A DNA stretch of 64,000 bases from Cyanophora paradoxa CCMP329 (GCA_004431415.1 QPMI01000133.1:1-64000), one strand, 5' to 3'. Counted from the stretch's first letter, positions 27,885-64,000 are shown. Notes: generated from the sequence alone by a model not told the origin. Translations and numbers: made by a program.

Positions 27885-28779
27885 AGGCGCTAGCGCTTGT
27901 CGTAAAGGAGCACATCAGCAGCTGCTGCAGGCGGAGTCAACGCAGCCTCCGGATCCTGATCATGAATTCGAAAAGGCGATGCTAATCGAAGACGCAGCTT
28001 TAAGCTGAGGAAAATTATTCTTTTGCCTCATGATCATGCATGATCAGTGCCCTAGGCCTGCAGCTGCGGCTGAAAAATTCTAGATCTAGCATTTTTCAGA
28101 GCTTCTGTGCGCGATTCGGCGAACCCCCCCCCCCACCCCCACCCCGTGTCAGCTAGAGCTGCCCGCCACGATTTAATATTAATGTTGCAAACAGCAGCTT
28201 GCAATTGTGCAAATGTCGTACTTAATTACGTATACAATCACATGCGAGTTTTGCGCTCAGACAGACTGAAAGACGTCGACTGCGCATGCGCATGCCATGA
28301 TGCAGCTGGATCCAGAGTTCGCAAGGTTATGGATTTCTCGCGAGATTAATTTGCGATTCATCGTTGAAGGCACCGAGACCAACTTATATTTGATTACTCA
28401 GCAAATGCATCGACTCGGCGATGTCAGAAAACATCAGAACGATTATTAAATGGGGGGGGTGCGGGGGGGCTTGCCCCCCTGCTTGTTGCCGTGGCGATAA
28501 ATTGCCGAAACTCCGAATTTGATTTTTGGTGAATTACCGGCCACAGCCTCTAGTCTACCGTGTAATACTTAATTACCGCGCGGACATATCTACTGCGCTA
28601 CCATATTACTGCGCTCAAAATCTTTAGAACGCAGTAATTTGGTAGGATATACCCCCCTGGGAGCACGCCGGGAGCGTAGAGTAGGGCGCGCGGGATAGCG
28701 GCGACCGGTGGGCCCCCGCAGAGACTCCGAAGCGTGTCCGAAAACCTCCCCAAGCCACCCCGCTCGCCAGAGGGCTAAC

Positions 28780-31700
28780 ATGCAGATCCCGACGATCGGG
28801 ACCGCGCCGGAGCTGCCGGACCGCCTCCCGACGCTTCGGGTGGCTTCCATCAACACCCAGAGCAGCCGCGGCCCCAGCCGCATCGCCTGGCTCGCGACCT
28901 TCCTCCGCGAAGCTGACCCCGACATCCTGGCAGTTGTCGACCACCGCTGGCACCAGGAGGATGCCGGGACCACCGCACTCCGGCCAGAACCGGGCAGCAT
29001 CCGGGCCGCCGCCGCGGCTTTCCAACACACACATCGCATCATCGCGCGCCCGGCGCCTCTCGACCGGTCTGGCGCAGGTTACAAGCGCGGGGTCGCCTTT
29101 ATTGTTCGCAACAGGCCGCGCAAGGCAGCCGCGTTCGCCGTGCGGGAGCTCCCTCTTCCAGAGCTCGCCCCGGCGGTGGCCGACGACGTCCTCGCGGTGG
29201 AGCTGACCCTCCCGTCGCCGTCCCCCCGGCCGCCCGAGACCATCATCCTCGTAGCTATCTATGCCCCGAACGCCGCGGATAAGCAAGCCGAGCTCGCGGA
29301 AGAGCTGACCAACTGCTTCAACAGCCCGCGGTTCAGCGCCGCCCACCTCATATTCCTAGGCGACTTTAACGCGTTCGCTGACCCCGCTCTCGACTCTCGC
29401 GGACACCGGACGCACCAACCCTTCGACCATTGGGCTGATGCCCTAGCGCAGCTCGGCCTTGAAGACGTGCTCCGGCGGCGCATGCCGACGACGCCACTCT
29501 TCACGCACTACACCTCAAAAGCCGCGCCCTCCCGCTCCGATGCTGCTCGCCTTGACTACATCTTCCCTGCGCTCTCGATCGCAGACCGCGCCGTTGCCGT
29601 CGGCGTCGCTCTGTGCGCGGGCCCGGAACATCGGCCGGACCACGACGCGGTCTTCGCCGAATTCCTTCTTCCCTCCGCCGTCCCCCGCGCGACGCCTCGA
29701 TATCGCTTTGACGATCGCATCCTGCAGCTCCAGCGGTTCCGGGAAAAGGTCGAGACGATCGTCCAGCGGGCGCGCGCCGGCCACCTCGCCGGGTGGAACT
29801 ACGTGCCCGACACGGGCACGCCGGAGTGGCTCGATTGGTTCGACGCCCTCTGGGCAGAGATCATTCGGGCGGCAAAGGACACCCGCTTCGCCCTCAACTC
29901 GGCGGCCGCAGCCCAGCGGGCCGAGGTGACCGCGGACATCCGCCGCGTCGCGGAAGACCTCGCGGCCGCAGCCAACGAGTCCGAGGAACAGGGAGAACTC
30001 TTAGACATGCTGCGAGACTCAGTCTCGGAGTTCTGGGCCCTTGCTGACTCCTCCCGCGCAGCCCGCCGAGCGGCGGCGCGGGCCCGAGCGCTCGACCAAG
30101 TTCTGCGCCTCGACCCGTCCGTCGCCCGCGCGATCCGGTTTGGTGACGCCGCCCACTCGATCCCGGCCCTGCACTCGCCGGATACCGCGCCTAGACCCCC
30201 GTCCGAGCCCGAGGGGCTCACCACCGATCCCGCCCTCATAGCCGCCCGTGTCCATCGCCATTTCCAAGCTATGAATACTGCTCGTCGTCCCATGTCAGAG
30301 CATGCGACACCGTGGCCCGCCCCGACGGTGCTCGGCCTGCCCTCGCGGGGCGCTGTGCAAATACCGTCCGGGCAGCCCGGTGAGCGGCTCGAAAGTGACA
30401 TGGAATCCCCAAGCATTGCCGCGCTCGAAGCGCGCTTGCGCCGCCTTTTCTTGCTTCGCCCTGGCGCCTCGCTTTCTAAAGCCGAGGCTGAATTCCTTCT
30501 CCGGGTCTGGGACCCCCTGCCCCTGCACGCACGCCGGGCGATCGCCGGGCAAATCACATCTGGGGAAGCGCTGGAAGTCCTGCGGAGTATGAACGCGCGC
30601 ACGTCGCCGGGGCGTGACGGGCTGACTGTTAAATTCTATCTGCACTTCTGGGACATACTAGGCGACCTCGTGGTCGAGTCATTCCGCACGGCGGAAGCGG
30701 TCGGGTGCTTCTCCTTACGGCAACGCACGGGATTGATGATCCTCTTATACAAAAAGGGCGCGAGGGACAGGATCGAGAACTGGCGCCCGATTACTATCAT
30801 GCCGATCGACTTCCGGCTGTTCGGTGCCATCATGGCCCGACGCATGAACACACACGCGATGCACCACACGACATCGCCATGCCAAGCCGGCTTCATGCCT
30901 GGGCGTGCGGGCGCCGGCAACGTGTACCTGCTGCAGGCGCTGGTTAGGCTGGCCGAGCGTGAAGGGCTATGTGTCGCAGGCTTCAACAAAGACTTCCGCC
31001 AGGCGTACGATCGCGTGGAACATGTCTGGGCGCTGCGCACCGTCGCGACAATCGCGTACCCGGACGACTTCGTCTTCAAACTGCGAGCGTCGCTGAAGGG
31101 CATCCGGGTCTTCATCGTGATTAATGGGGTAGAATACGAGGTCGCTGTTCTAGTCGACTGCAGCACCCTCCAAGGAAACCCGATGTCGTGCGCACTCTTC
31201 AACACGCAGCAAGAACCGTATACCCGGGCGATACTGGCGGACCCCCGCATCCCCGGCGTCCTCATCCCGAACCCTCGCGGCGGCCCCCCCGTCCGAATCG
31301 TACTAGTCATCTTCGCTGACGACAACTTCGCGATCACCATCCTTCCGGCCGGGGACCCCGCCGCCCCCTTGCTCCTCATCCTAGCGATCGCTGACGCCTT
31401 CCATGACGTCTCCGGAGCCCTGCTGGGGTACCCCAAGTGCGCGATCCTGCCGCTGGGGACAATCGCGGGAACGGCGCCCCCCGCCTGGGCTCAGCCGTTG
31501 CTGGCAAGGGGCATTCAATGGGTACACGAAACCAAATCGCTCGGGGTACCGATCGGGCCGGACCCCGACTACAGAGCCGCCTGGCAGCGGGTGGCTGACT
31601 CCATGCTCACAGCCGCTGCCAAATTCCGCCTCACAGCCCTGAGCCTGCCAGAGCGGGTCATGATAGCGAATGTATATATCGCAGCAAAAATCTGGTACCT

Positions 31701-33567
31701 GGCCATGTTCATACCATGCCCGAGCGACGTCGAAGCCCGCATCGCTGCGATATACCGCGGCGTCATCTGGCCCGGGCGCAAGCGCGGTAGGATCAGCCAG
31801 GCAGTAGCCGCCCTCCCCCCGGAATGGGGGGGTATAGGGGCCGTAAACATACCCGAGCGGATGCGGGCGTGCGCGGGGTCCATCCTGCGCCTCCTCTGCG
31901 ACCCCACCCGCGAGGCTTGGAAGGACCTGCTCATGTACGACATCGCCCACGCGTCGAGCGCGGCCGTACGGGCCACGCTCCTGAGCGCTCCAGAGCTGGT
32001 ACTCGGCGCCTGTACCCCCCTGGGGACGGCGAGGGGGCTCCCGGCCTCCTACGCCGCCCTGCCCACGGCCCTCAAAGTCAGCAACGAAGTGGGACGAGGG
32101 CGGGCCCCTGAGTCCCTCCCAACTAGCTATGAGGCGTACCTTGCCGAGGCCCTCTGGTTCAACCCGGCCCTGTCGGAGCAGAGCTCGAGCCCCTGGGGCC
32201 GGGCGCCCGCGGACGTCAGCCTTGCAATGCGCGGGATCGGGACCGTAGCGGACCTGATCCTGGCCCTCCAGCGCCCGCTGAGCGGGCCGGTGCCGATGTC
32301 CCTAGGCCAGGCCAATCACGCCGCCACCCTGCGGGGACAGATTCGGGCACGGATGACGAGCGAGGGGCGCGGGACGCCGGACCTGGCCCTCGGCAGGGCC
32401 GCGGAGTTCCGCATCTTGGTCGGGGCGCCGGGGCCCGGGGCCCCGGCCGAACGCCTGATCCTATTCGGCGCCGCGCCCCGCACGGGGCCGGCCCTGAGCA
32501 TTCCCGTGCTCCGCGACGGCACGCTCGACGTCGCGGGGGCGGAGACGCTGGCCGCCCCCCCACCGACCACCACCCTCCGCCGCGCCGTCGTCTCCACGGT
32601 CCCGGCCAAGACGCCGTCCCTCCGGGCCCGGTTCCCGGCCGGCCGCCCCGTCTACGTCGCCGCGACGGACCGGGCGCCCTGGGTCCCGGTCGGGCTCCTC
32701 CTTGGCACGGGCCACCGCCGGAAGCGCTGGGCCGAGGCCACGATCGGCAACGTGTACGCGGCGCTGGCTAGCTCACAGGAGAACCCGGGCATCCTTACCG
32801 TGCGCCTGGGCCCCCCCCCCCCGGGTCAGACTTGGGACCGGGTATGGCGGCAAGGGGGCCGGTGCGCAGCGCTCACCGGTCCCGAGCGCCAAACGTGGAT
32901 GCTGGCCCTCCACGGGGCGCTGGCGACGGGCTCGTTCCTCCACCGATCCCGCATCTGGGACGGGCCGCAGTGCCGAATCTGCGCGGACCCTTGTGAGACG
33001 CCGGACCACGCGTTAATCGAGTGCCCGCACGCCCGCGCTTTCTGGGCAGAGCTCGTGCAGGAGATCAACACTAGGTGCGGGACGCGCCTTGAATGCACGT
33101 GGGCGCACATCCTGTCGGCTTTCTCGGCGATGCCAAGGCGCCAGGGGCCGCGGCCGCGCGCCCTCATCCCCATCCTGATCGGCATCGGCCTCCACGCGAT
33201 CTGGCGCCTGCGAGCCCGGTTCATAGCAGATCAGTCGCTGGCCACGTACCCCACCACAGCCGGGGCATGGCGGCTGTACCGCACCACGCTTTGGCTCCGC
33301 GCGTTGGACGCCAACGTACGGGCTGTATCCGCTGAGGCGGGGGTTCTCAACGTGCCGCTACCGGAGCCCCTTGACCCCGACGAGCCGGAGGCGAGCATGC
33401 TCGCGGGCCTCCTCCCGCCCTCGGCGCCCCGCCCCTCACGCGCCTCGTTCGACGCGGTGTGGGGTGCGCACGGACTCGTGTGCTGCCGCCCCGACCCCAC
33501 TCAACTCCGCATCGCGAGAGGCACGCTCACCGCAGAGCCCGAACGTTCCGACGCCGACACGAGCTAA
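28780..33567 (+). CDS. ORF2-type polyprotein: APE endonuclease, reverse transcriptase, C-terminal CCHC zinc finger (1595 aa from ATG 28780)
   Basis: APE motifs VASIN, IYAPN, GDFN, RLDYIF, PDH. RT motifs SPGRDG, NWRPIT, QAGF, DFRQAYDRV, QGNPMS, FADD. C-terminal CRIC..ETPDHALIEC. Intronless and uninterrupted. Confidence 0.96.
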   Translation: MQIPTIGTAPELPDRLPTLRVASINTQSSRGPSRIAWLATFLREADPDILAVVDHRWHQEDAGTTALRPEPGSIRAAAAAFQHTHRIIARPAPLDRSGAGYKRGVAFIVRNRPRKAAAFAVRELPLPELAPAVADDVLAVELTLPSPSPRPPETIILVAIYAPNAADKQAELAEELTNCFNSPRFSAAHLIFLGDFNAFADPALDSRGHRTHQPFDHWADALAQLGLEDVLRRRMPTTPLFTHYTSKAAPSRSDAARLDYIFPALSIADRAVAVGVALCAGPEHRPDHDAVFAEFLLPSAVPRATPRYRFDDRILQLQRFREKVETIVQRARAGHLAGWNYVPDTGTPEWLDWFDALWAEIIRAAKDTRFALNSAAAAQRAEVTADIRRVAEDLAAAANESEEQGELLDMLRDSVSEFWALADSSRAARRAAARARALDQVLRLDPSVARAIRFGDAAHSIPALHSPDTAPRPPSEPEGLTTDPALIAARVHRHFQAMNTARRPMSEHATPWPAPTVLGLPSRGAVQIPSGQPGERLESDMESPSIAALEARLRRLFLLRPGASLSKAEAEFLLRVWDPLPLHARRAIAGQITSGEALEVLRSMNARTSPGRDGLTVKFYLHFWDILGDLVVESFRTAEAVGCFSLRQRTGLMILLYKKGARDRIENWRPITIMPIDFRLFGAIMARRMNTHAMHHTTSPCQAGFMPGRAGAGNVYLLQALVRLAEREGLCVAGFNKDFRQAYDRVEHVWALRTVATIAYPDDFVFKLRASLKGIRVFIVINGVEYEVAVLVDCSTLQGNPMSCALFNTQQEPYTRAILADPRIPGVLIPNPRGGPPVRIVLVIFADDNFAITILPAGDPAAPLLLILAIADAFHDVSGALLGYPKCAILPLGTIAGTAPPAWAQPLLARGIQWVHETKSLGVPIGPDPDYRAAWQRVADSMLTAAAKFRLTALSLPERVMIANVYIAAKIWYLAMFIPCPSDVEARIAAIYRGVIWPGRKRGRISQAVAALPPEWGGIGAVNIPERMRACAGSILRLLCDPTREAWKDLLMYDIAHASSAAVRATLLSAPELVLGACTPLGTARGLPASYAALPTALKVSNEVGRGRAPESLPTSYEAYLAEALWFNPALSEQSSSPWGRAPADVSLAMRGIGTVADLILALQRPLSGPVPMSLGQANHAATLRGQIRARMTSEGRGTPDLALGRAAEFRILVGAPGPGAPAERLILFGAAPRTGPALSIPVLRDGTLDVAGAETLAAPPPTTTLRRAVVSTVPAKTPSLRARFPAGRPVYVAATDRAPWVPVGLLLGTGHRRKRWAEATIGNVYAALASSQENPGILTVRLGPPPPGQTWDRVWRQGGRCAALTGPERQTWMLALHGALATGSFLHRSRIWDGPQCRICADPCETPDHALIECPHARAFWAELVQEINTRCGTRLECTWAHILSAFSAMPRRQGPRPRALIPILIGIGLHAIWRLRARFIADQSLATYPTTAGAWRLYRTTLWLRALDANVRAVSAEAGVLNVPLPEPLDPDEPEASMLAGLLPPSAPRPSRASFDAVWGAHGLVCCRPDPTQLRIARGTLTAEPERSDADTS

Positions 33568-33628
33568 GCTGCCCTAGCTGAGCGCGAGCGGGGGCTGAGC
33601 GGGAAAACCGCCGGGCCGAGCACCACAT

Positions 33629-34579
33629 CTACGCCGCCTCCCCGTCCGGCACAGACAGACCAGCCTGGGCACAGGTCAGTGAGAGGAGACGAGGGAGCGG
33701 TGAGGCTGGGGAGCGTGCCTGCCGCAGGATGTCCAGGCACGCGGCGACAGTCTTGGCGGACTTGCACGAGCTCCCCGAGACGCCGACTACCTGATCGGCG
33801 GCGCCCGGAATCGCACGACCCCGGAACACGAAGCTCTTCCTGCGAGACCGGGGTCGCGGGGGCGAGACTCTCGGCGCTCACCGGGCGGCATGCGCACCAA
33901 GCCTCGTACACGCCGGGGACGCGCCCGGCGGAGACGGCGTAGTACTTCTCGAACCGAAGGCCCTCCCACTCCGCGTGCGAGATCTCCGGCATGCGGAGAA
34001 CTGGCGGCGCGGAGGCCGGCGGTGCACCAGCGGGCGCCGCAGCCGGCCCCTCCGGGGCGGCGACGGATGCTGGGACGGACAGGAGGGGCGTGCGGCGCGG
34101 GAACCGCTCCACCCACTCCGCACGCTGCCGAATGGCGCTCGCGACCGCGTGAACGGCCTCCGCTCGGTCACGTAGAATAAGCGCCTCACGGAGACGCAAC
34201 TCGGCGTCCACCTGCAATCGGTAGCAGTCAGCGGACGGCAGGCCGGCACGCCGCCCCACCCCGCCGCACGGAAACGCTGTCCTCGAAGCCCCAGGGACGC
34301 CCATACAGCGACTCCAGCTCGTGCGCCAGCTCGGCGGCCGTGGGGCCGGTTGGCGGGCCGTCTGACGAAAGAGCCAGCCGCACGTGCTCGACTGCGCACA
34401 AGCTAAGCGGCGGAGGACGCCATGGCGGGGCACGGACCGAAGTCTGGCGGCGAGCCCCGCTTGAAGAACCCGTTGAACACCCGGAGGATAAGAACCTCGG
34501 GTATGGCGCGCAGACCGGGCTCGGTTTTGATTCGCTTCGCTGGCTGCTCCGGGCCGTCGGCGTCGGGAGTGTCCGCCAT
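33629..34579 (-). CDS. 4-exon gene (~262 aa) ending in an RNase H1 N-terminal hybrid-binding / Cauli_VI-like domain
   Basis: Exons 34579-34438, 34391-34270, 34211-33898 and 33839-33629 are separated by GT-AG introns of 46, 58 and 58 nt and join in frame. Splicing completes KYYAVSAGRVPGVYEAW..AADQVVGVSGSSCKSAKTVAACLDIL. The N-terminus has an NLS-like PAKRIK. Confidence 0.8.
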
Positions 34580-34683
34580 CGGTTCTATACGGGGGACAAA
34601 CCGACGGGGTACAGGGATTGAGGCCCCCGGGGCCGGACCTGGGACAGGGTACACCCCCGTCTAGACTTAGAGCGGCCTCAAGG

Positions 34684-36758
34684 ATGGCGGGGAAGCAGCA
34701 ATCGATACTCGAGGGCCTCGCGCGGATGAGCCAGGCCGGCGCCAACTCCCGGACGCAGGGATCGCCGCCCCCAGCTCCGGCAACCGGGCCCGCCCACTGG
34801 CAGGCCTCGGACGGGGCCCTGCTCGGCATTTCCTCCACGATGGAGGACGACGCGTACGGCGAAGACGCCTCCGAAGTGCAAACGCTCCCCCCCGCCCGCG
34901 CCCCCCCGACGTATACACGTCGTGCGCGCGCGACCGACCGTCCTGACCATACTGGTCGCCCGACCCGCAGTCCCAGCTATACGTCGCGTTCGACCAGAGG
35001 ACCGCCAACGAGCTCATTCGGGCGCTGCGGCCCGACCAGATCCGGCAAAAGAAGGAAGGTGAGAAGGACGTGTTTGAGTACGACAAGGACGTCCTCACCC
35101 ACGACGGCCACTCCGGCCGCTTCAGCCTCCGAGGCGAGTTCAAGGTAGACCACATCCGCCGTGCGGTGGCGAACCTGCACTCGGATCTCTTCGAGGTGCC
35201 CCTCGACGAGCTGCGCCAGCGCGTGCTGGTCCGGACCGCCGGGCGGGCGGACGGCTACGTCGTCCGCTTCATCGACGATGACGGCGTCGATATCAGGCGG
35301 TCGATCATCGCCGACGAGGGCGCGATCGTGCCGCTCAAGCTCGGCCGCGCGGCCGACCCCGACCGCTTCGCGCGCGACGTGGACACCAGCATGCGCCGCG
35401 ACTACAACAAGTATCAGCGCGAGCTCATCAACCGCGGCGCCGAATCCAAGTACGTCCTGGCGGGGCACTCGTTCCGCATCGTCGGGTTCTGCACGGCCCA
35501 GCTCTCACCGGACGCGGTGCGGGACGTCGAGTACATGACCCACTTCAAGGTCGCGCTGGAGGACTCGAAGGTGCCCGAGCTGGATGGCGACGGCCAGCCT
35601 GTGATCGGCCCTGGCGGCGGCATCGTCTTCAAGAAGAAATACCTCCAGCGCGTGACGTTCCCGCGGGAGGGCGCCAAGCGCGGCTTCGTGGGCGGCGCCG
35701 ACCTGGACGGCAGCAGCCTCATCCTGTACGGCCGGGAGGACCCGCAGCCCGGGCGGCCCATGCTGGAGGGCATCCTCTTCCAGTCCAAGATCGTGTCAGT
35801 CAACGGGGTCGTTCAGGGGGCTACCGTATTTCACCCCTTCTGGCTCCCCCGCAAAATCGAGATGCTGATGACCGCGAAGGCGCCGCGGCCGAACAAGAAG
35901 GGCCACGTCCCGCGGCACCTCCAGTTCCTCTCGGAGTACAACGCGCACGTCCACGGGCGCCCACCGCCGCCGCCACCGGCGGCCGCGGGCGCCGAGGCGG
36001 CAGCGGCGGGGGCCTCGGGTGCCCCGCCCAAGCCGAAGAAGCAGAAGCTCATCACCGCCCCAGCCAAGTCCGCCCCCGCTGCCCCCGCCTCCGCCCCCGC
36101 CCCGCCCCCGGCCACCGGCACGGCCGCCGCGGCGGCGGCCGCCGTGACCGCCGCGGCGGCGGTCGCCGCGGCCGGGGCGCCCCCACCGGCGCGCGCCCCG
36201 GGCTCCGCCTTCTCCTTCCCTCCCGCCCCCGCGGCGGCTGCGCGCCCGGCCGCCCGCGAGGCCCCGCCCCCCCCGCCGACCTGGGCCCCGGGGGCCCCCA
36301 TCCAGCCGAACTGGGCCAACCTGACGGCACCCGCCGCCGCCCCCTACCAACCCGCCCCCCTGGCCGCTACCGTCATCCCCTACGGAGCGTCGGCACCGCC
36401 CGCGGCCGGCGCCCCTACCCCCGCCGAGATGGACGCCTTCTTCCTGGAGATGGCAAAGCTGCGGCAGCAGAACGCCGAGCTCCGGCAGCAGCACGCGCAG
36501 CACCAGGCGCAGCAGATGCAGCAGCCGGGGCTGGGCTCCGGCTCCATGCGGGACGGCGTCAACAAGCTCCCGGGCGGCTCGAGCAGCCTCCGCCCGGGCG
36601 CCGCGGGCCTCGACGACCTCTCCCTCCCCATCCCCACGCCGGCGGCGGCGCCGCGCCCCGTGACTGCCCCGGCGGCGGCGTCGCCGCCCGCGGCCGCCCC
36701 GAAGGCGGCGGCGGGGGCGGCCCACGCCTTCGACGCCTTTGACGACGACGAGTACTAG
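34684..36758 (+). CDS. ORF1/gag-like protein (~659 aa if spliced 34876-34970): globular N-half, Pro/Ala-rich region, coiled coil
   Basis: A long open frame at 34971-36758 follows a CTGAC branch and CCCGCAG acceptor, with an in-frame stop at 34944 upstream. RRM-like strands GYVVRF and FRIVGF, coiled coil EMAKLRQQNAELRQQ. ORF1 identity and donor position are inferred. Confidence 0.7.
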
Positions 36759-38978
36759 ATCCTCCCAGCTTAGCCCAGAACCTCTCCCGTATATCCGACC
36801 CCAGTGCCACCTAGGCCCTGTCCCTGCAGCTTCCCCCCTCTAGCCTCTTGTTATACAGCTATAGTGTTCGCCCCTCGAGCTACCTTTCCTTTCCGGCCGG
36901 CCTCAGCCCGCCTCACGCGGAATCGCGACTGCGTCGGTATCTATTTCGTAGAGCCCCATTGTCTTTCCAGCTCAACCCCACGCTTACTCCCTCATGTACA
37001 TAGCCATAGTGCTTTGCCAGGGCTCCGTTTCCGTCGATATCCCACCTTGCCTCACCGCTCACTAGTCTCTCCAGGCCCCTGGCTGCCCTGATGCCCCAAC
37101 CCTCTAGAGGGCGTCCCCATATGCATACCTCGTAGGTCTCTGACATCGCCTCCGTTCATCCGTACAATCGGTTTTCTACCTCGGTCTCTAGCACCACCAC
37201 TTATACTTACACACATACCTATTCATAGTGGCCCCGCGCCCCCGCTGTCCGGGGCGGGCGCCAGTAGAGTAGCACGCCTCGGTCACGTAGATAGAGGTGT
37301 GCTTGAATAACGCGAACGACCCCGGCGGGGTCCCCTCCTGGAACGCAGTAATTTGGTAGCGCAGTATTACCCCCTTCGCTAACAAAATTTAGATTTTCGA
37401 GGCCGATGGAACGCAGTCACTGAGTAATTTGGTAGCGCAGTAAAGCGCCTACCGGCGCAGAACTTTTGGAACGCAGTAATTTGTGGCGCAGTAGATAAGT
37501 ATTACACGGTACTCCAGCGGCAATTTAAAACATCGGCTAAAAAAGCATTCCTACAGTATTAGCTAGGCTCAGCCTGATCGAGCGGCTCTTGCTGCCGCAG
37601 TGCGCCGACTCTGCGGCCCAGACTGCGGGCCAGACTGCGGCCACAGGCCCACAGCTCAGCGGCTCGCGGAAACAGCTGGCATACTACTACTAGTATATAT
37701 AATATATGATATATAGTAGTAGGCGGCGATGCCGCAGTGATACCGGTAGCCCGGCGGTAGGCCGGTCTAGCACATATATTGCGCCGGTTCAAGTTCTATA
37801 GGAGATCTCGTGACTCGGCGTAAAGTACCCGAACTTGTTCAGGGCCGGACTCCTAAGTACAGGCTCCTAGACTTGGCATTCTGTACCCTCAGCGTGCAAA
37901 AAAAGCGGCAAAAAACAGTCAGCGCGCAGCAAGAGTTCGAAGGTCCCTAGCCAATATGTTTCGGCTCCTCCCGCTGCAGACGTCGGCTCCTCCCGCTGCA
38001 GATATGACTCGCGATTACACGTTCGTTAACAAGCATTCTGAACTGGTACACGCCCCGATCCTGACTCGTCATCACGCCGCGCGACATCCGCAGCGGCAGC
38101 TAGTGAAGCAAGTGACTCTGAGGACAAGGAGAACGCATCTGTAGCTTCTAACGATCATACAGGTGCGTGTCAGCAAGCCCCGCGTGCTGCCTAGCTAGTA
38201 CTACTACAGTAGTAGCCTGGTACTACGGCCCGGCGGTACTATTTACGGTATACGTAGTAGCGCTAATTATAAGCTCCTTTAGCTTAAGCTTAAGCTTCCG
38301 TCGCTAGGTACCGGTTGGCTCCGTTCCGAACTATTTCGACTCCTAGCGAATTACTAAGAGCACCAACGTAGAGGTTTGCTTTCAACTTTCTCAAGTTTCA
38401 ACGGTTTAAATTTAAGCCTTGAAGGCTGAAGCTAACGATCGCGAAGGCTCCCGGATAGGGTTGTAGCGCTATATTTGTTATTAAAAAATTGGTGATTTCG
38501 AATTTGGAGCGCTATATATAGATTTATTTTTTGGTGAATTACCGGCCAGTCACTAGACACCAGCACTGCGGGGGCTCCCCATGGCCCATGGGCCATGGCC
38601 AGGGGGCATATAGAAAAAAAGCCGAAGCAAATTAACTAAGACAATAAGACGAAGAAAGACAAGACAAAGAGCCAAAATCGACAATAAAAAAGGAAAGACA
38701 CAGAGACAGCTGCATACGCAGATCGAGAAGAGACATTAAGCGAACCAGACGGAGCAGATCGATATCTAGACCTCGACCGTGATGATTTATGCAGCATAAA
38801 TTAAAATGCTCATGATCAGCGGCTGATCATGAAGCTGACGTCGACGCCGATCGCGAATTAAATGGCCAAAGATCTTCAAGGCTTGAGCGGACCAGCTGCA
38901 GGCCGCTCTCACTTTTCGGAGTCGGGCGAGCTGAAGGCAATATTAATTGTTATAGCCCGCGATCGGGATCGCCCGGGG

Positions 38979-56593: not shown

Positions 56594-57281
56594 CTGCGGG
56601 CACGACGGGGAAGAGTCAGAGGCCCGAGGGTTGGTTCGAAGGGATCCGAAGAGCTAAGACTTCGGAAAAGGGTATCTAGATCTAGACCGAAAGGTCCGCC
56701 CTATTTGCAAGCTTCTGTGCAGAACAGGACCTCCAATGTTTCTATTGATCTTGGAACTCCGAAGTTCTTCTTGGATAAAAACACAGGTCGGTGTGAGGGT
56801 ACTGGACACCAATTAAATCCGACATTATCCTATCTTATTCAGTCTCGCCACTTCCCTCTATCTTGAATTCTCAGTCTCCTCAGTGCCAATATGCATAAAT
56901 CTTTCATAGTTTTTATAACTTTATGCATATCTTTGCACTAACTTTATCCCAATCCTCAGTATCCCATTGCATAAATCTTTATCTTTCCCCCAAAGTTTCC
57001 CCCAAACTATGCATAACTTATCATAACTTTATGTATTCTTATCATAGTCCTATAGCTAGCTCGTTTTCCCGCGATGTACCCTGTTTTGTGCCTATTCTGT
57101 GCATCGGGAACTTGCTCGATAGCATCGCAAGCGTCATCGCGATCGGGATTGGCGATATCGATGCCATCGGGAATTTCTCGATAGCATATGCATCGGGGAT
57201 CGATAGAAAAAGGTGGTGGACGCAATCGACCCCTCGCAAAATTTGATGTCAACTTTTTATAAACGCTGTCATCCTACAAAA

Positions 57282-57832
57282 ATGCCTTTCACTGTTCAAT
57301 GCATCCCGCTGTCTAAAATGCCGCCACTGATCCCGTATCCAATTGTGGGGCAACTTCCATACCTGAGTCAAAGCAATGCAACCGCTGCAAGGAAACGAAG
57401 CCGGCTTGTGAGTATGGAAAGAGGAAGCTGAAATCGGGGAACATTACTCTGCAAGCATATTGTGCCCCATGCTTTAAAATCGTTCACACCGAACAAGCTT
57501 CCAAATTTGCCTCAAAGCCAAAGCCTGAAATCGAGTCCAAAACTTGCACCAAATGCGAAGAGACTAAGCCAATCTCTGAGTTTTACAGGAATGCTATGAA
57601 TGCTGACGGGTTCAACTCATCATGCAAAGATTGTGTCAACGAATATACTAAAATGCATGCCGAATCAATGAAGATGTGCCCAAAGATTAACGTCGAATCT
57701 AAGGTCTGTTCAGCCTGCAAGATCGAAAAGCCTGCAAGTGATTATAATAAAAGAAGTACTGCCAAAGATGGTCTATATTCAAAATGTCGCAAGTGTTTCA
57801 ATGAGACTCGCAAAAAGCACCCCAAGAACTAA
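57282..57832 (+). CDS. Protein with three ESKxCxxC..KP....CxxC zinc-binding repeats (frameshift near 57355)
   Basis: ESKQCNRCKETKP..YCAPC, ESKTCTKCEETKPISEF..DGFNSSCKDC and ESKVCSACKIEKPASDY..DGLYSKCRKC share one frame. The ATG at 57282 is in a different frame. Confidence 0.7.
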
Positions 57833-58082
57833 TACAAATTTTCGAGGCTGATGTTCCCTATTTTTTGTGCATCGTGATCGGCGATGCCATCGAGAAAAGT
57901 ACATATGTACATATTCGAAAAATGAGGTGGTGGACACCGATACACCCATTGGAGAGAAAAGCCCCGCCCACTATGCAAGATACATGCCTTTCTTATGCAT
58001 GATCTATGAAAAATAACAATAAACCCAGTCGTCAGACAAGCTGCCTTGGCTGCGCCTCTCTCATTCTTCGAATTCGAATTCT

Positions 58083-58346
58083 TTACATAGGAGCACTCGC
58101 AGTTATCTCGCTCATTTTTACCACAGTCCCGCGATTAAAAGCTTGCTCTACAATCGCTTCCTTTGTGAGTGGAATTGGAATCCCAGCAGCAATACAGGAT
58201 TGAACTTCTTTGGCTACAATGTCATCAGTTGCCGACATTGCACGACTTTTCACTACATTCGTAATCCATTCAGCTGGGGAGAACGCAATATATTCCATTG
58301 CTGACTTTTCTGTATTCGATAAAATCACTTCGTATATGTTCGACAT
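58083..58346 (-). CDS. 87-aa hypothetical viral protein resembling small phage fibre-adjacent proteins
   Basis: Intact ORF (LSNTEKSAMEYIAFSPAEWITNVVKSRA..IPIPLTKEAIVEQAF) directly downstream of the C1q-like gene. Resemblance is from recall, not a search. Confidence 0.65.
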   Translation of the reverse strand: MSNIYEVILSNTEKSAMEYIAFSPAEWITNVVKSRAMSATDDIVAKEVQSCIAAGIPIPLTKEAIVEQAFNRGTVVKMSEITASAPM

Positions 58347-58368
58347 TCTCTACTCTAAGGAAACAAAA

Positions 58369-59278
58369 TTAATCGATGGCGGTTAGCATGGCTATATAAA
58401 ATCCACATCTGTCTCCCATACATTCTGAACCCACAGCTCTACATAATCCCCGGAGAAAGTTCTGCTATTCCTCCTGTCTGCATACCTATCCAGGTCCCAG
58501 CAGGATTCGCATTGAATCTAAATTGACTCACCGTAGAGCCATTTATTTTTATTTCAAGCAGTGATATGCCACTCGAAACATTCGCTGATAAAGAAGACCC
58601 CAAAAGAATGTATATTCCTTTTGTCTGACATGTGAAACGACCATCAGTAAACGTTGATGTCCCAAGCCTTGAAAAACCAGTAGTATAACTGTTGAATTTA
58701 ATAAATGTGCTTCCTGATGCAAGTGCTGTGGTTCCATATCTTCCCATCATAGGGTGACTGTTCATTTTAACACTACTACTGAATGTGCCGGTGGTTCCAG
58801 TAACCCCTCCATTTGCTGTAAGAAGCCCTGAGAAAGTCCCAGTGGTTCCATTTACTCCTCCACTTGCTGTGAGCAACCCAGTAAATGAGCCTGTCCCACT
58901 AACTGTCGCATTTCCATTGACCCCCAAGCCAGTCCCGATCCATGCCCCGCCACTGTAAACTTGGAAAGCCGCCGAATTCCTATCAGCCGGATTAAAAGCC
59001 GTTTTGGAATCCTGTTGACCTTCATATAGATTTTCTTTGGTGACCAGCCCCGAAGAGATTGCGGGTCGATTAGATACGATCATTTGAGTAGCTTTAACGA
59101 CTCCATCAGCCTTGTCAGCTCGGAGTTCTTTGACTCTGAGTATGCTTTGGTCATTAAAAGAATCGGTTTTCGCTGTCTCAGTCGAAGGGTGGCTTGGAGA
59201 TAAATCATAAACAGTGTGTTGGACATTGTGGACAGCACTTGCACTCAAAGAAAACACAGGCGTGAATACAGTTGTCAT
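58369..59278 (-). CDS. Fibre-like protein with Gly/Thr repeats and C-terminal C1q-like domain (two apparent 1-bp deletions at 3' end)
   Basis: GTFSGLLTAxGGVxGTT repeats and GRFTCQTKGIY. The shifted frame continues LSPGDYVELWVQN..CGFYIAML. Confidence 0.7.
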
Positions 59279-59299
59279 CTTTAAATTGCTCTTTACTTA

Positions 59300-60763
59300 T
59301 TAAGCGAGAATATTATTGTTTTGGAGAGGTCCGACAGCAATCCAATGGAGTTTAAGGGTGCGATTGCTTTGGATCACACTGTTATAATTGATGTCCGAGT
59401 AACAAGTGAATATCGCAATCCAAGTGAATTTATTTTTGAACCCAATGCGATTTCCGAACTGATATTCAGCAGAGAGATATATGCTATTGGTGAAATCGAC
59501 ACTTGTTAAAATAATACTGTTTTCGAGAGTAGCAGTAATTACAGGATCACTAAAAAATGGGGTTGAGAATGTAACGGTTCCCGATACTGTGGTAAAATCC
59601 CCTTTGTAATAGACTCCGGCAGGAATTACTACATCCATTGTCCCTTGTTGCACATATGCATTTGGATTCACATAACTACCGAAATTCGTGAGCAACTCGA
59701 TGCTGTGATTGTGAGTAGGTGGCGAAGTGGGTGTGTTAATTAAATCGTCATAGTTCCCGCTTGTAGCCACAGCATGCAAGTTTGGTGTATTAACTAAATC
59801 TGTATAGCTCCCACTTGTAGCCACAGCATGCAAGGTCGGTGCAATAGGGGTGTTAGTTAAATCGTTGTAATCACCACTTGTGGCAACAGCATGCAAATTC
59901 GGCTTAGTAAATAACCTATCCCATGTCCCATTGAAAGGGAGTGTAGATTCTGATATAATTACACCTTGATCAATCCAACGAGGTATATAGCTTGTGAAAT
60001 CGGGAGGATTTACAAGATCATAGTAATTTCCTGTGTATGCTACACTACTCCAAGTCGGCTTCTGAATGATATCACTCCACTTCCCACTAAATCCCGCCGG
60101 CACATCTGTAAGCTCTTTATAGCTCACCTTTTGTTTCGGTATAGACAGCTCGATTGGTGAGAATGCACCCGAAAGGCGATTTTCAGAGGTGAAATACATG
60201 AGACTTTGACTGTTAGGGAATACATCCACGAGATTAAAGGTGAAATTCGTGGGCAATTCGAGTCGACTAATTGGGGTGTTGTCGCCTAATATAAATTCGG
60301 CGCCTGTATGCACGACCGGATTTCTTTGGATATACATATTTGATGCACCTATTACAGGTGCCACAATGGGCACATCCGAATTAACGAGATTGCAAGTGAT
60401 GGAGAAAATGGTTTTGGGGGCATACAGATTGCAATCAAAGGTAATCGTGGCGGGATCAATAGTAGGATCGACATTTGAACAGATCTGAAACATCCACCCA
60501 CCCACACAGTTGCAATTTAAATTGCGAAAGGCTGTGCCTGCCATTGCATCCACATAGCCGATCCCATTTGCAATGTCATAGATGTGACCAAACTCGTAAC
60601 CGAAAAGGTCATTCCATAGGTTAGAAGCCATAGCTCCCATCACATAGCCTTTTAGATTAACAATTAGGTCATTGGATTCACTGGGTATATTGCCATGGGT
60701 TATATAAAATTGATTATCCAATACAGCATTCTTTACTGTCGTTTCTACTATGGGTTCCGTCAT
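59300..60763 (-). CDS. 487-aa tail-fibre-like protein
   Basis: Three LHAVATSGxYxDLxNTP repeats plus related units. C-terminal VTFSTPFFSDPVITAT...LHWIAVG resembles an H-type lectin/fibre tip. Confidence 0.8.
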   Translation of the reverse strand: MTEPIVETTVKNAVLDNQFYITHGNIPSESNDLIVNLKGYVMGAMASNLWNDLFGYEFGHIYDIANGIGYVDAMAGTAFRNLNCNCVGGWMFQICSNVDPTIDPATITFDCNLYAPKTIFSITCNLVNSDVPIVAPVIGASNMYIQRNPVVHTGAEFILGDNTPISRLELPTNFTFNLVDVFPNSQSLMYFTSENRLSGAFSPIELSIPKQKVSYKELTDVPAGFSGKWSDIIQKPTWSSVAYTGNYYDLVNPPDFTSYIPRWIDQGVIISESTLPFNGTWDRLFTKPNLHAVATSGDYNDLTNTPIAPTLHAVATSGSYTDLVNTPNLHAVATSGNYDDLINTPTSPPTHNHSIELLTNFGSYVNPNAYVQQGTMDVVIPAGVYYKGDFTTVSGTVTFSTPFFSDPVITATLENSIILTSVDFTNSIYLSAEYQFGNRIGFKNKFTWIAIFTCYSDINYNSVIQSNRTLKLHWIAVGPLQNNNILA

Positions 60764-60792
60764 TATTTCTCTATTATGGCATTCTACAAAAA

Positions 60793-63700
60793 TTAAGGTC
60801 GCATTGGGAGAAGCTCGTATGTTCTGCCCTCTCGTTGTGCAATTTCCGCCATAAAGTCTGCATTTTCATTCATTATTGATTCAGCCATTCGTTCTGCTCG
60901 TGATTTTTTGGGTGCTGCCCTACTTGCTGGTGGTTGATCAGTTCTCACAACACTAAGACCATGCCCCTCGGCTGACCTCACCTCTAACCCACATCTCCTT
61001 CGGCTGTTTGGGTCACATTAAGCTCTGGTGTTGAGTATTTATTACCTGCCCTGCAATGGTTCTGTCTATGCAAGCACAACATAGAGCTCGGAATTTGTAT
61101 GCAAGCACAAGTCCAAGAGCACCGAGAATCGGCAAGAGAATGAGAAGCACTAACGTTCCTGGATCCATTCCTGGCGATCCGACTGGATTTGTAGGATTTG
61201 AGGATTATTAGGTGTCGTGTTCGGATCTGGATCAGTTGTAGGGGGATCTTTTGAATCGGGATCTGGCTTAGGTGTGTTTGGATTGGGATCGTTTGGTGGC
61301 GGTTCTGTCGACCCTGCTAATGATGTCGGCGCTGTGTATGCATTCGCAAACACGATGGGAGCCGTTGCTGGATTTCCTGTTGAAGACCCTGTAATTGCAC
61401 CATAGGTATCTGAGAGATATTTATATAATTCCTTTGTCACAGGTGGATTGCTCACAGATCGGCACACCCAAATATTGCATGTAGTATCATAGACTGTGTC
61501 CCTGATAAATGGCGGTAGAGCTGTCCCACTAAATGACTCAAAGAGCCCATTTCTCGATAGCAACCTATGGGCTGCATCACAGTTCCCACCCTCGAAATAT
61601 TTGGTAGCCGAAATTGCACCTTGCACATAAATATTGCAAGTCGAGTGCATTCCGATGCTATTTAGGTTGGGAGTGTATCTATCATCGAGCCGGACAGTGC
61701 ACACCCATGGGGAAGCGGTTTTAATATATTTCTTATCGCCCACTTCGATTACATCTGTATTTGGGTGGCTGTCAAGCTGAGTCCAAACAGCATCATATCT
61801 GAAAGTGTAATAAACTAAGAGACCATCTGTGGACGATGTGAAAGCAAAGAAGGTCATAAAGTCCGTGGATCCAAAGAAGTCAGCATTGGTCGATGTAAGG
61901 GTGACTCTGGGATAGCTCATGTTGACAGTCTCAGAAGGGTATGGAATATATGAGGTGTAATTGCGATTGAAAAGATAATAGTGAAATCCATCTGAGACAT
62001 TCGAGTGAGTGGGCAAGGTGACTGATAAGGTCTTACTTCGATTCTCAAACGTGTTCTGTATGACAATATTGCAAGTATTAATATATCGAGAATCGAAAAA
62101 GTAATTATTCGTTACTCGATTATCGATCAGAGTTGCATTGGTTCCATTAAATACGAAATTCTGCCCATTTATTCTCGTAGTATGGAGGTCGGTCACATCG
62201 AGAGGATACCTTATTTTCAAGCGGTCTTCGGGGTCAAATCGCGGAATAGTTCCTGTTGCCTTCCAATTAATAGTAAAGGGAGGAGAAAGGGACACAGGTG
62301 GGATTGGAGTAAGATTAAACTTCGCAAAATACAATCCAACAGGATATCCTGACAGAGCATAGGTCACTGTTGCATTTCCGACAAGTGTAAAGCCGGTGGT
62401 TGTTATGTTAGTTGCAACAAATGGGGAGTAGCCGGCTGGTGCATTGTTAATAGAGGTGGTCGACCCATTATTGATCACATACAAATTCGTGTCAGTTATT
62501 TCAATAGTAGGAGGGGAAACAAATGGTGTCTCAAATGTGAAATTAAAATTCGCTGGAACCGCTGCAAGGTATCTATATGTTGTTGCTGATATCTCGGATG
62601 CCTGGAATACTTTGCTTCCCCTCTGCACTACATTACTGGTGTCTTTCACATTGTGATAGGATATACTGGGAGTTGGGGAGAGCACCAACGAAATAGCATC
62701 TGGTAAATCAGACTTCGTTATATACAGTTCTTTGAGAAACTCCTTTCTAAAAGGGGCGGTCAGATCTCCAATAGTAGCCGATGACCCTGCGACCACAATA
62801 TTACAGGTGTTTGCATTCAAAGTATAAACTGTGTTCCACCTCAAAGAATTCGCCCCAAGATCGAAATTCTGTGAGAAGGGCACGATATTGCTACCTTGTA
62901 AATCTCGGTAAACCTTCACTCTGGGTTTGCTATCGAATTCAGGGGTGATATAATTGATGTTAAGAGTGAAACTAATAGTAGCTTCGGAACTCAATGAGTT
63001 GTTTCGGATGATAAGTAAATTGTATGTCTCGTTAATGACAAACGAAACCTGAAACCCTGTGGAGGTGACATTTTGGATAAATGCTTTATTAGATTCATTA
63101 TTGTTATAGATAGGATTATAATAAGTAGTGTGATCCACCAATGAAACAGTGGGTATATTCGTCTCGAAACCTGTGACACCCAACTGATCCCAAGTGAATG
63201 TATATGTAGGTTTGCCTACGTAAGCGACATAGACCCCATTTGCGAGCTGCTGAGGGTATCCCTCGACAGTGTAGGTCTCAGTTCGCGAAACTGAGCGGGA
63301 AAGATTGCTGTTAAAGTCGTTGTAGCTGATCAGAGCTCTCTCATCAGTGGGTATTTGATTGGGTCGGAGTGAGTGATTTAATGGAAGGATTAAATTGGAG
63401 GCAAACATGGAAACTCCATGCATCTCTGACCATCTCAGATTCGACAAACCAACTCGGTATGTGTTATCAGTCGCGGGGTAAATGTTCCTTTTCGATAGAA
63501 TATGGGCTAAGGTAATTGCAAGCGCTCCATCTGCTGCAAACAGAGCATTAATTTCGGATTGCAAAGCCGCGATTTCGGTAGTGTGGGTCGTGAGGGTTCC
63601 ATCCTGACTTGAATCTTTTGTGTTCTTGTTCCTCTCGAACTCCAAAAACGCCTTTACGATGTCCTTGCCCAAAAGATCGTTTATATTGTCTCTGGTAATG

Positions 63701-63999
63701 TAAACATGGTCTGTTCTCAGTGCCTGTTTCTCCGTGGTAAAAGCCGGAATTTCCTCTGCAAATGATATAGTCGTTTTATCAAGTGCTAAGGATCTCACAT
63801 TCGGAGCATTCGCACCGATAATATTTACGACGCTCCCATTTTCCGTGATCTCTAAGACAGGTTTCGCGGGGTCTAATGTGAAAACGCTCTCTGTTATCTG
63901 GGGAACCGATGCGCTCTTCTGAATCACAAAGGATTCGATGTTTAGGTTACAGGTTGCGACATTGGTGGCGAAAAACGACTCGGAGTTAAGCGAGTTTAC
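60793..63999 (-). CDS. Large fibre/adhesin-like protein (>950 aa, open at window end) with probable C-terminal TM anchor after frameshift correction
   Basis: Motifs NIYPATDNTYRVGLSNLRW, NIVPFSQNFDLGANSLRW and FTFETPFVSPPTI..TTTGF..INWKATG, then a Pro-rich stalk. The shifted frame gives LVLLILLPILGALGLVLAYKFRALCCAC. Confidence 0.75.
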
Positions 64000-64000
64000 G

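Follow-up and report, generated by a model that had tools for sequence, protein, structure and literature searches.

Introduction

LINEs are generally taught as elements with one or two ORFs carried on a single sense RNA, and those of the L1/Tx1 type insert by target-primed reverse transcription (TPRT). Antisense or spliced accessory genes are known from complex retroviruses and from some plant Ty3/gypsy elements, but these are LTR elements, unlike the Cyanophora LINE described below. Within LINEs, minus-strand transcription begins inside human L1 (ORF0/antisense promoter) and inside Dictyostelium TRE5-A (C-module), as it does in the Cyanophora element. However, these units are situated in a UTR or a terminal module, and they are not known to encode a multi-exon domain protein that shares its promoter with a sense gene.

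We have analyzed a 64,000-nt stretch of the genome of Cyanophora paradoxa CCMP329 (QPMI01000133.1:1-64000; hereafter, the window). It harbors a GC-rich insert of 8,695 bp (28646-37340) with an exact 19-bp target-site duplication, in which two spliced genes on opposite strands lie between a reverse transcriptase (RT) gene and the 3' tail. Neither this layout nor any Cyanophora LINE was described in the full-text literature searched.

Results

Insertion site and boundaries

The initial annotation of the locus, made from the sequence alone, had reported identical 19-bp flanks, no poly(A) at either end and, between them, an intact APE-RT ORF starting 134 bp from the left end; all three statements hold. 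The two 19-bp copies (Table 1) are the same sequence, runs of six or more A or T are absent at both ends, including the 3' end at 37340, and the 5' and 3' ends of the element have just one 9-mer in common. When the insert and one 19-bp copy are removed, a palindrome with 26-nt arms is rebuilt, the outer 7 bp of which are now separated by 8.7 kb. As the rebuilt empty site is a palindrome containing the 19-mer only once, the duplication is real and is not a by-product of the flanking repeat. The GC content is 62–81% within the insert versus ~50% outside, with a sharp step at both ends. All 8.7 kb belong to a single insertion and entered together. The first 5 nt of the right duplication may have originated in the element RNA through microhomology, because a contig with the G variant of the tail (see below) reaches 37345 before ending.

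No further copies of the element were revealed elsewhere in the 64-kb window by BLASTN and TBLASTN, and no RNA families were found by Rfam in 28000-38000. The flanks of the element are part of a high-copy repeat, and a degenerate 19-mer motif occurs three times in the right flank.

Table 1. Features of the element and its target site; positions are counted from the first nucleotide of the window.
Feature	Position	Strand	Basis or remark
Left 19-bp target-site duplication copy	28627..28645	.	same sequence as 37341-37359; inner part of the palindrome's right arm, split by the insertion
5' leader, 134 nt	28646..28779	+	presumed internal promoter and 5' UTR
ORF2-like gene, intact, 1,595 codons and stop	28780..33567	+	uninterrupted; Exo_endo_phos, RVT_1 and zf-RVT matches
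Apurinic-type endonuclease (APE) domain, ORF residues 23-274	28846..29601	+	Pfam Exo_endo_phos, 33.4 bits (cut-off 24.5)
RT domain, ORF residues ~590-890, FADD motif	30547..31449	+	Pfam RVT_1, 46.4 bits; aligns with L1 ORF2p residues 451-740
C-terminal CCHC zinc-binding motif (zf-RVT)	32896..33045	+	C-x2-C-x7-H-x4-C pattern
HBD gene transcript	33284..34598	-	joints confined to the RNA contig sets X15 and X17; exon tiling of P0006
HBD gene CDS	34579-33629	-	exons 34579-34438, 34391-34270, 34211-33898, 33839-33719, 33664-33629, and 3' UTR
Compact divergent promoter region (putative) between the two start codons	34580..34683	.	RNA contig ends
p659 gene transcript	34666..37340	+	RNA contigs with 95-nt joint; P0001 tiling; 3' end probable
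p659 CDS	34684-34875 + 34971-36758	+	95-nt GT-AG intron 34876-34970
3' tail	37222..37340	+	three predicted hairpins, AATAA at 37306, no poly(A); contig depth and fold
Right 19-bp target-site duplication copy	37341..37359	.	same sequence as 28627-28645

The reverse transcriptase ORF

The ORF2-like gene starts with ATG, and its open frame carries three Pfam domains. Alignment with two LINE endonucleases revealed that the motifs N, IYAPN, GDFN, D, and DH are retained, while the QE motif has Asp in place of the catalytic Glu. The zf-RVT match, obtained with the segment scanned by itself, scored 28.4 bits versus a cut-off of 27.5. The closest solved relative of the product is human LINE-1 ORF2p (E = 2e-24), with R2 at 8e-11. 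The RT is very divergent, as its best database hit, P0003, shows 26% identity; no HBD gene is present near P0003, which is encoded on an unrelated, metagenomic contig. Judged by its domains (APE, RT, and CCHC) and the target-site duplication, the element is an L1-like LINE.

The antisense hybrid-binding gene

The RNA and DNA runs used here all consist of assembled contigs, from which strand, transcript ends and copy number are not readable. The gene on the minus strand, named HBD after its predicted hybrid-binding domain, is interrupted four times, by introns of 46, 58, 58, and 54 nt. Three of these are GT-AG and one is GC-AG; they are seen as joints in the RNA contig sets X15 and X17 and in neither of the two DNA sets. 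Exon by exon, the gene reproduces the database model P0006 exactly. The stop codons of this gene and the RT ORF are convergent and just 61 bp apart, and the HBD 3' UTR is antisense to the final ~280 nt of that ORF.

The 244-aa product, which was searched first via one exon and then via the database gene-model proteins, possesses a nuclear-localisation-like motif and the hybrid-binding domain at the C-terminus, and lacks a nuclease. Residues 177–220 of P0006 match Pfam Cauli_VI (PF01693) with 25.8 bits versus a cut-off of 21. In both P0006 and the model of the second gene copy, P0007, the match covers profile positions 1–34 of 44 and is broken by a ~12-residue insertion after the conserved Trp. 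ESM features point to the same family (0.76), which is to be taken as a lead only; a PDB sequence search with P0006 gave only chance-level matches, and its AlphaFold2 model (pLDDT 39) was too poor for a fold search. Judging from this domain, the RNA:DNA hybrid generated in reverse transcription is the probable binding target of the protein.

The p659 gene and the shared promoter

The CDS of the plus-strand gene corresponds exactly to the 659-aa database model P0001. RNA contigs extend to ~34598 for the HBD gene and begin at 34666 or 34672 for the p659 gene. Both genes have transcripts separate from that of the RT and are spliced, and a divergent region of at most ~100 bp appears to act as their promoter. 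The RNA contig coverage falls at the end of the element, and the p659 transcript probably shares the 3' end of the element. The proposals of a convergent spliced HBD gene and a divergent ~659-aa gene, both located 3' of the RT under their own promoter, are thus well founded in the RNA-only joints, the tiling of the models, the Cauli_VI score and the position of the tail, the promoter function itself being deduced from contig ends.

The description of p659 as ORF1-like is not supported. No Pfam domains were detected in the protein, even at E up to 5, and neither a Transposase_22 RRM/CTD nor a zinc knuckle, esterase or PHD domain was recognised that would identify it as a LINE ORF1p. An exhaustive HMMER search of 1.84 billion representative proteins revealed only the sister protein as a relative of the N-terminal domain, and the ESM Atlas gave no usable match. 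For the AlphaFold comparison with ORF1p that had been suggested, the single-sequence AlphaFold2 model of P0001:50-400 reached a pLDDT of 35, too poor for a fold search. Besides its folded N-terminal part, which at pI 7.2 is not basic (whole protein, 8.6), the protein has a linker rich in Pro and Ala and a helix rich in Gln. In view of the missing ORF1p link, calling the element "reordered" is not supported either. Since the N-terminal domain has no relatives besides the sister, p659 is not a conserved host gene; as a guess, it may have an RNP or scaffold role.

Two signals were set aside. The sole weak HMMER match to p659, P0008, was limited to a motif of 27 residues in a bacterial repeat protein and was judged coincidental, and the "joints" at ~36080-36720 in the DNA runs were discounted as cross-matches of a low-complexity (CCG)n-like tract.

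The 3' tail and the sister copy

The last ~120 bp of the element have a DNA contig depth ~5 times that of the body and occur with G and A variants at 37314. The predicted fold of the tail (z = -2.7) was equalled by 1 of 200 shuffles. Its AATAA, 34 nt upstream of 37340, is one of just two on the plus strand of the element.

Each accessory gene occurs twice in the Cyanophora proteome, always in an adjacent pair (g1826/g1827 here and g18964/g18965 on tig00021135), and only about two full copies of the element exist. The DNA contigs carry the sister alleles across the RT and both accessory genes at even depth, unbroken after the RT stop, and span the RT/HBD junction without a break at a depth of 112–135. 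The variants at 33822, 33825, and 33835 match the residues in which P0006 and P0007 differ, those at 36051 and 36123 match the differences between P0001 and its sister model P0002, and eight further variants are located within the RT ORF. The second copy therefore has RT sequence as well as both accessory genes. Exact-match look-ups with the proteins P0002, P0006, P0007, and the RT ORF product retrieved no record. Because the sister copy shares the pair and the RT, the depth is even past the RT stop, and the multi-copy tail lies at the far 3' end, the accessory genes are inside the LINE, flanked by its RT ORF and its tail, and not behind it. Of the distinct LINE architecture put forward by the initial annotation, the two spliced genes between the RT ORF and the tail stand, while the reordering with an ORF1-like gene is not supported.

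The sister HBD model P0007 has 18 extra residues, which are the translation of the 54-nt intron of the window. At least two HBD introns are also present in the DNA of the sister copy, and the accessory introns are kept in the genomic copy analyzed here.

Discussion

Based on these results, the insert is likely a young copy of an L1-like Cyanophora LINE family in which the unit that transposes comprises, besides the RT ORF and a structured 3' tail, a two-gene module between them. According to this scheme, a full-length sense RNA would be produced from a 5' internal promoter, the ORF2-like protein would be translated from it, and the RNA, ending ~30 nt past AATAA, would then be copied by TPRT. 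On the sense template, the HBD introns, all four of them antisense, would be invisible, whereas the 95-nt sense intron of p659 would have to escape splicing there. Separate, shorter mRNAs would provide the accessory proteins, which would act in trans. The retention of a sense intron in the copies is awkward for an element copied from RNA.

A broader interpretation, which we put forward tentatively, is that Cyanophora LINEs of this kind are "complex" in the sense in which retroviruses are. They would have no 5' ORF1 and would rely on trans-acting proteins from internal spliced subgenomic mRNAs with a bidirectional promoter, one of these being a nuclease-free hybrid-binding protein on the RNA:DNA intermediate of TPRT. 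The antisense HBD gene would then be a conserved hallmark of several LINE families in this alga.

The accessory genes may instead be passenger cargo: a LINE could have picked up a pair of host genes along with their promoter and introns (through read-through and later rearrangement, for instance) and may duplicate the genes without their having a role in retrotransposition. We consider this rather unlikely. The ordinary spliceosomal introns and the separate promoter would fit host genes, and the same holds for the lack of ORF1-type or other retroelement domains in p659, for its GC3 of 0.93 versus 0.81 in the RT ORF, and for the RNA contig depth of the two accessory genes, 54–108 and 15–20 versus ~3–4 for the RT, although contig depth is a poor measure. 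However, neither gene has a LINE-free copy in the proteome, an orthologue of p659 was found nowhere by exhaustive HMMER, and a hybrid-binding domain is of obvious use in reverse transcription.

The absence of an ORF1 upstream of the RT ORF in this copy could be an artefact of 5' truncation, which is frequent among LINE insertions; a full-length member would then have an extra gene ahead of its RT ORF, and the architecture would otherwise be real. This is improbable, as the 134-nt leader is closed by a stop within 17 codons in all three frames. The fold of the leader is no better than that of shuffled sequence (z = -0.05).

A one-off 3' transduction or a nested foreign insertion, in which the LINE ends just past 33567 and the following 3.8 kb are flanking DNA or a separate element, is very improbable. 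A 9-nt inverted match adjoins both stop codons (33563 and 36766), with ~0.24 such matches expected by chance, and would fit a nested unit. Yet no tail, AATAA or A-run follows the RT stop, the HBD mRNA extends into the RT ORF across the short interval between the convergent stops, and the multi-copy tail is found only at the far 3' end. The initial annotation had named copies with an upstream ORF1 that end shortly after 33567 as the observation that would speak for a transduction or a nested insertion; in the DNA contigs, the RT and the module were equal in depth, and the junction was unbroken. Furthermore, no TIR and no target-site duplication of at least 10 nt bounds the two-gene module, and a third, LINE-free gene pair was not found in the proteome.

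That no insertion took place, the 19-bp match stemming from the repetitive, high-copy flanks with their degenerate 19-mers and the region being a resident locus or an assembly join, is hardly credible given the palindrome rebuilt by excision, the GC steps at both ends and the independent short-read contigs that cover body and tail.

If the two-gene module is indeed part of the transposed unit, an element that still transposes as a unit tolerates a divergent promoter in its interior, an antisense gene with several introns and an intron in the sense direction, and the design space of non-LTR elements is wider than has been assumed. The element may serve as a natural system for studying how a template RNA escapes splicing. 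The linkage of a stand-alone predicted RNA:DNA hybrid-binding protein to LINE replication is an idea open to direct testing. LINE machinery able to duplicate intron-bearing genes together with their promoters also bears on the spread of genes and introns in an early-branching algal lineage.

Comparison With Known Elements

The closest counterpart of the element is its sister copy (tig00021135_g18964/g18965), which has the same adjacent pair and RT-region variants from the same family; the HBD proteins of the two copies fall in one 90% cluster, and the N-terminal parts of p659 are 99% identical. Like L1/Tx1-type LINEs, the Cyanophora element has an N-terminal APE, an RT with FADD and a C-terminal CCHC motif, and its 19-bp duplication is within the typical 7–20 bp. 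Unlike them, it has no ORF1 before the RT gene in this copy, its 3' tail is structured and, in this copy, without poly(A), and behind the RT it carries two intron-bearing genes with a promoter of their own, one of them antisense.

Extra ORFs captured by retroelements have been described as ORF3s in bdelloid LTR retrotransposons (PMC5408684). In Cyanophora, by contrast, it is a LINE that carries the extra genes, and these contain introns and are transcribed independently; the words "intron" and "own promoter" do not occur in the text on the bdelloid elements.

The name of the Cauli_VI family derives from a pararetrovirus protein. Caulimovirus P6 (PF01693) and the Cyanophora protein are alike in that a reverse-transcribing element encodes this domain without an RNase H catalytic domain. 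In contrast to both caulimovirus P6 and the HBD of RNase H1, the predicted domain in Cyanophora is C-terminal in the product of a small spliced antisense LINE gene and bears the ~12-residue insertion.

Insertion site and element boundaries

The element forms a GC-rich block bracketed by an exact direct repeat (see table), whose identity on the two sides had been noted in the initial annotation. The DNA on either side is part of a high-copy repeat with nested inverted arms, and degenerate copies of the 19-mer lie nearby. This palindromic repeat (28540-28645 and 37341-37530) has a contig depth of about 2,900, compared with about 120 for the element. When the insert and one 19-mer were removed in silico, a palindrome with 26-nt arms and 92% complementarity was restored, of which the outer 7 bp are now 8.7 kb apart. 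Because excision restores this palindrome, the target held the 19-mer once and the insertion made the duplication; an accidental origin of the 19-bp duplication from the flanking repeat is ruled out by the rebuilt empty site. Tx1-type elements prefer repetitive targets. The target here is a high-copy palindromic repeat, for which this LINE may have a preference. At the far end of the window, the region 56594-64000 has a low GC content (42-50%) and was flagged as a candidate Polinton-like virus.

Coordinates of the element, its parts and its target site
Feature	Position	Strand	Remarks
GC-rich block (element)	28646-37340		62-81% GC, set in ~50% GC, ORF-poor DNA
Direct repeat, 19 bp, exact	28627-28645 and 37341-37359		brackets the element
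Rebuilt palindrome	left arm 28591-28616; right arm 37341-37366		10-nt loop; right arm = 19-mer + next 7 nt
RT ORF	ATG 28780 to stop 33567	+	uninterrupted, 1,595 codons; begins 134 bp from left end
Element tail	37222-37340/5	+	last ~120 bp; ~5x higher DNA contig depth; two variants at 37314

Reverse transcriptase gene and 5' end

The reverse transcriptase (RT) ORF, initially described as an intact APE-RT ORF close to the left end, is confirmed as such. The Pfam search revealed an endonuclease/exonuclease/phosphatase domain, RVT_1 and a C-terminal zf-RVT; the long linkers yielded neither RNase H nor any other domain. Among solved structures, human LINE-1 ORF2p is its best relative (2e-24), with R2 proteins at 8e-11; the predicted protein may be called L1-like in the sense of resemblance, not of clade assignment. 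The best database match covered 28% of the query at 26% identity, and the database search found no Cyanophora gene model for this ORF. The endonuclease motifs align with those of two other LINE endonucleases, except for the catalytic Glu of the QE motif, which is replaced by Asp at ORF residue 55 (28942-28944), although the insertion looks recent.

All three frames of the 134-nt leader are closed within 17 codons, and therefore this copy contains no ORF1; it may have been truncated at its 5' end. The 9-mer GTAGAGTAG occurs at 28676-28684 and again at 37264-37272, at distances of about 30 nt and 70 nt from the 5' and 3' ends of the element, respectively (E 0.08), probably by chance.

Structure and transcription of the accessory genes

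Two DNA and two RNA public contig sets, composed of assembled contigs rather than raw reads, were aligned to 31550-37500. The kinds of these sets are guesses by annotation; X15 and X17 were taken as RNA because spliced joints occurred only in them. The RNA sets revealed four short deletions of 46, 58, 58 and 54 nt, reading on the minus strand as GT-AG in three cases and GC-AG in one, and, on the plus strand, a single GT-AG deletion of 95 nt; the DNA sets lacked all of these joints. In an exon-by-exon check, the minus-strand exons tiled P0006 (tig00000523_g1826, 244 aa) and the plus-strand exons tiled P0001 (g1827, 659 aa), both residue for residue. The convergent spliced gene for a hybrid-binding domain (HBD) and the divergent gene of about 659 aa (p659) anticipated in the initial annotation were thus recovered, the former also by a Pfam match. 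The spliced HBD model was searched via one exon, and P0006 matched the RNase H1 N-terminal hybrid-binding domain with 25.8 bits (cut-off 21) over profile positions 1-34 of 44, with an insertion of about 12 residues after the conserved Trp. On this profile match, P0006 is a predicted hybrid-binding domain protein.

The start codons at 34579 (minus strand) and 34684 (plus strand) are 104 bp apart, and the RNA contigs of the two genes come within about 70 bp of each other, which points to one compact divergent promoter serving both. Between the HBD stop (33629) and the RT stop lie 61 bp, and the 3' UTR of the HBD gene overlaps the RT ORF in antisense over at least 280 nt. The RNA coverage of p659 extends into the element tail and falls about tenfold at the element end; therefore, its mRNA probably ends where the element ends. 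Few contigs covered the RT region in the two RNA sets, at a depth of about 3-4, compared with 54-108 for the HBD gene and 15-20 for p659, a hint, given that contig depth is a poor measure, that the accessory genes are better represented than the RT.

One of the HBD RNA contigs extends past 33284 (minus strand) by 151 nt that have no counterpart in 31550-37500. At 33284 the minus strand carries a donor-like GTGCGG, identical to the other donors of this gene, and the only minus-strand AATAAA of the element is at 29103-29098. The 3' UTR of the HBD gene may contain a long intron that spans most of the RT ORF in antisense, possibly to 29050-29210.

The p659 protein is an orphan. Among 1.84 billion representative proteins, the only relative of its N-terminal domain was the product of the sister copy, P0002, and the quality of its structure model was too low for use. 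With no Pfam family, no look-alike protein and a pI of 7.2 for the folded part, the label "ORF1-like" originally given to this gene found no support, and neither did the label "reordered". In P0002, 24 residues of the P0001 folded part are missing, and in the Pro/Ala-rich C-terminal part the translation follows another frame over about 60 residues before returning. These differences stem from indels in the sister, from assembly errors in GC-rich runs or from differences between gene models.

The sister copy and the origin of the gene module

Our analysis supports a three-gene LINE architecture, with the accessory genes located 3' of the RT as the initial annotation had proposed; the support comes from sister alleles, even depth and a terminal tail. 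The alternative, in which the gene module was acquired by 3' transduction or is a nested foreign element, is unlikely on several grounds. In the C. paradoxa proteome (EukProt), each accessory gene occurs exactly twice, both times beside the other (g1826/g1827 and g18964/g18965, the latter on tig00021135), and no LINE-free copy of either was found there. Over 31550-37500, 22 positions of the element differed between the DNA contigs and the window. Variants at 33822, 33825 and 33835 (R>Q, F>Y, S>G) are the exact differences between P0006 and its sister product P0007, and those at 36051 and 36123 (I>L, A>T) are the exact differences between P0001 and P0002, so that the DNA contigs carry sister alleles. 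Eight more variants fall within the RT ORF (31776-33291); therefore, the sister holds the RT part too.

The RT/HBD junction is crossed by unbroken contigs in both DNA sets (X12, 31550-36119; X1, 32911-36660), and the X1 depth is even (112-135) from the RT to 37240. In the DNA contigs, no RT copies of comparable identity ended shortly after 33567, as a normal LINE would have done had the module been a one-off event. Against a nested element, the edges of the 3.2-kb gene module showed neither terminal repeats nor duplications.

The 3' end of the element also argues against transduction, which would place the tail module directly after the RT ORF. Nothing tail-like was found after the RT stop; the multi-copy module, 119 nt long and present in roughly 10 copies, lies at the extreme 3' end, as is typical of LINE tails. 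Three predicted hairpins (z = -2.7) map to this stretch, and one of the only two plus-strand AATAA motifs of the element lies 34 nt before the element end. This copy has no A-tail, in agreement, as far as its 3' end is concerned, with the reported lack of poly(A). The contig of the G-variant tail goes 5 nt beyond 37340 and then stops. The initial 5 nt of the right repeat may thus belong to the 3' end of the RNA itself, an arrangement that would provide microhomology with the nicked target.

Introns retained in DNA copies

Translated in frame, the window's 54-nt intron yields exactly the 18 additional residues present in P0007, and the 58-nt intron 33840-33897 contains two of the sister-type variants. 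No intron-less form was found in the DNA contigs, which provide presence-only evidence. Antisense introns are expected to be kept because they are not recognisable on the sense template RNA; the 95-nt sense intron would have to escape splicing on whichever RNA is copied.

A separate DNA contig of 558/559 nt, found in both DNA runs, matches only 34874-34950 (77 nt, with three mismatches and one gap), a stretch covering most of the p659 intron. A paralogue of this intron, and not of its surrounding exons, thus exists at another genomic site, and the intron could be a mobile or repeated intron-like sequence.

Comparison with known elements

Only about two copies of the element exist, and any roles of its accessory genes are putative. 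It is of high interest for transposon biologists. Full-text literature searches found no published account of such a LINE, and the nearest published analogy found was the capture of ORF3 by bdelloid LTR retrotransposons (PMC5408684).
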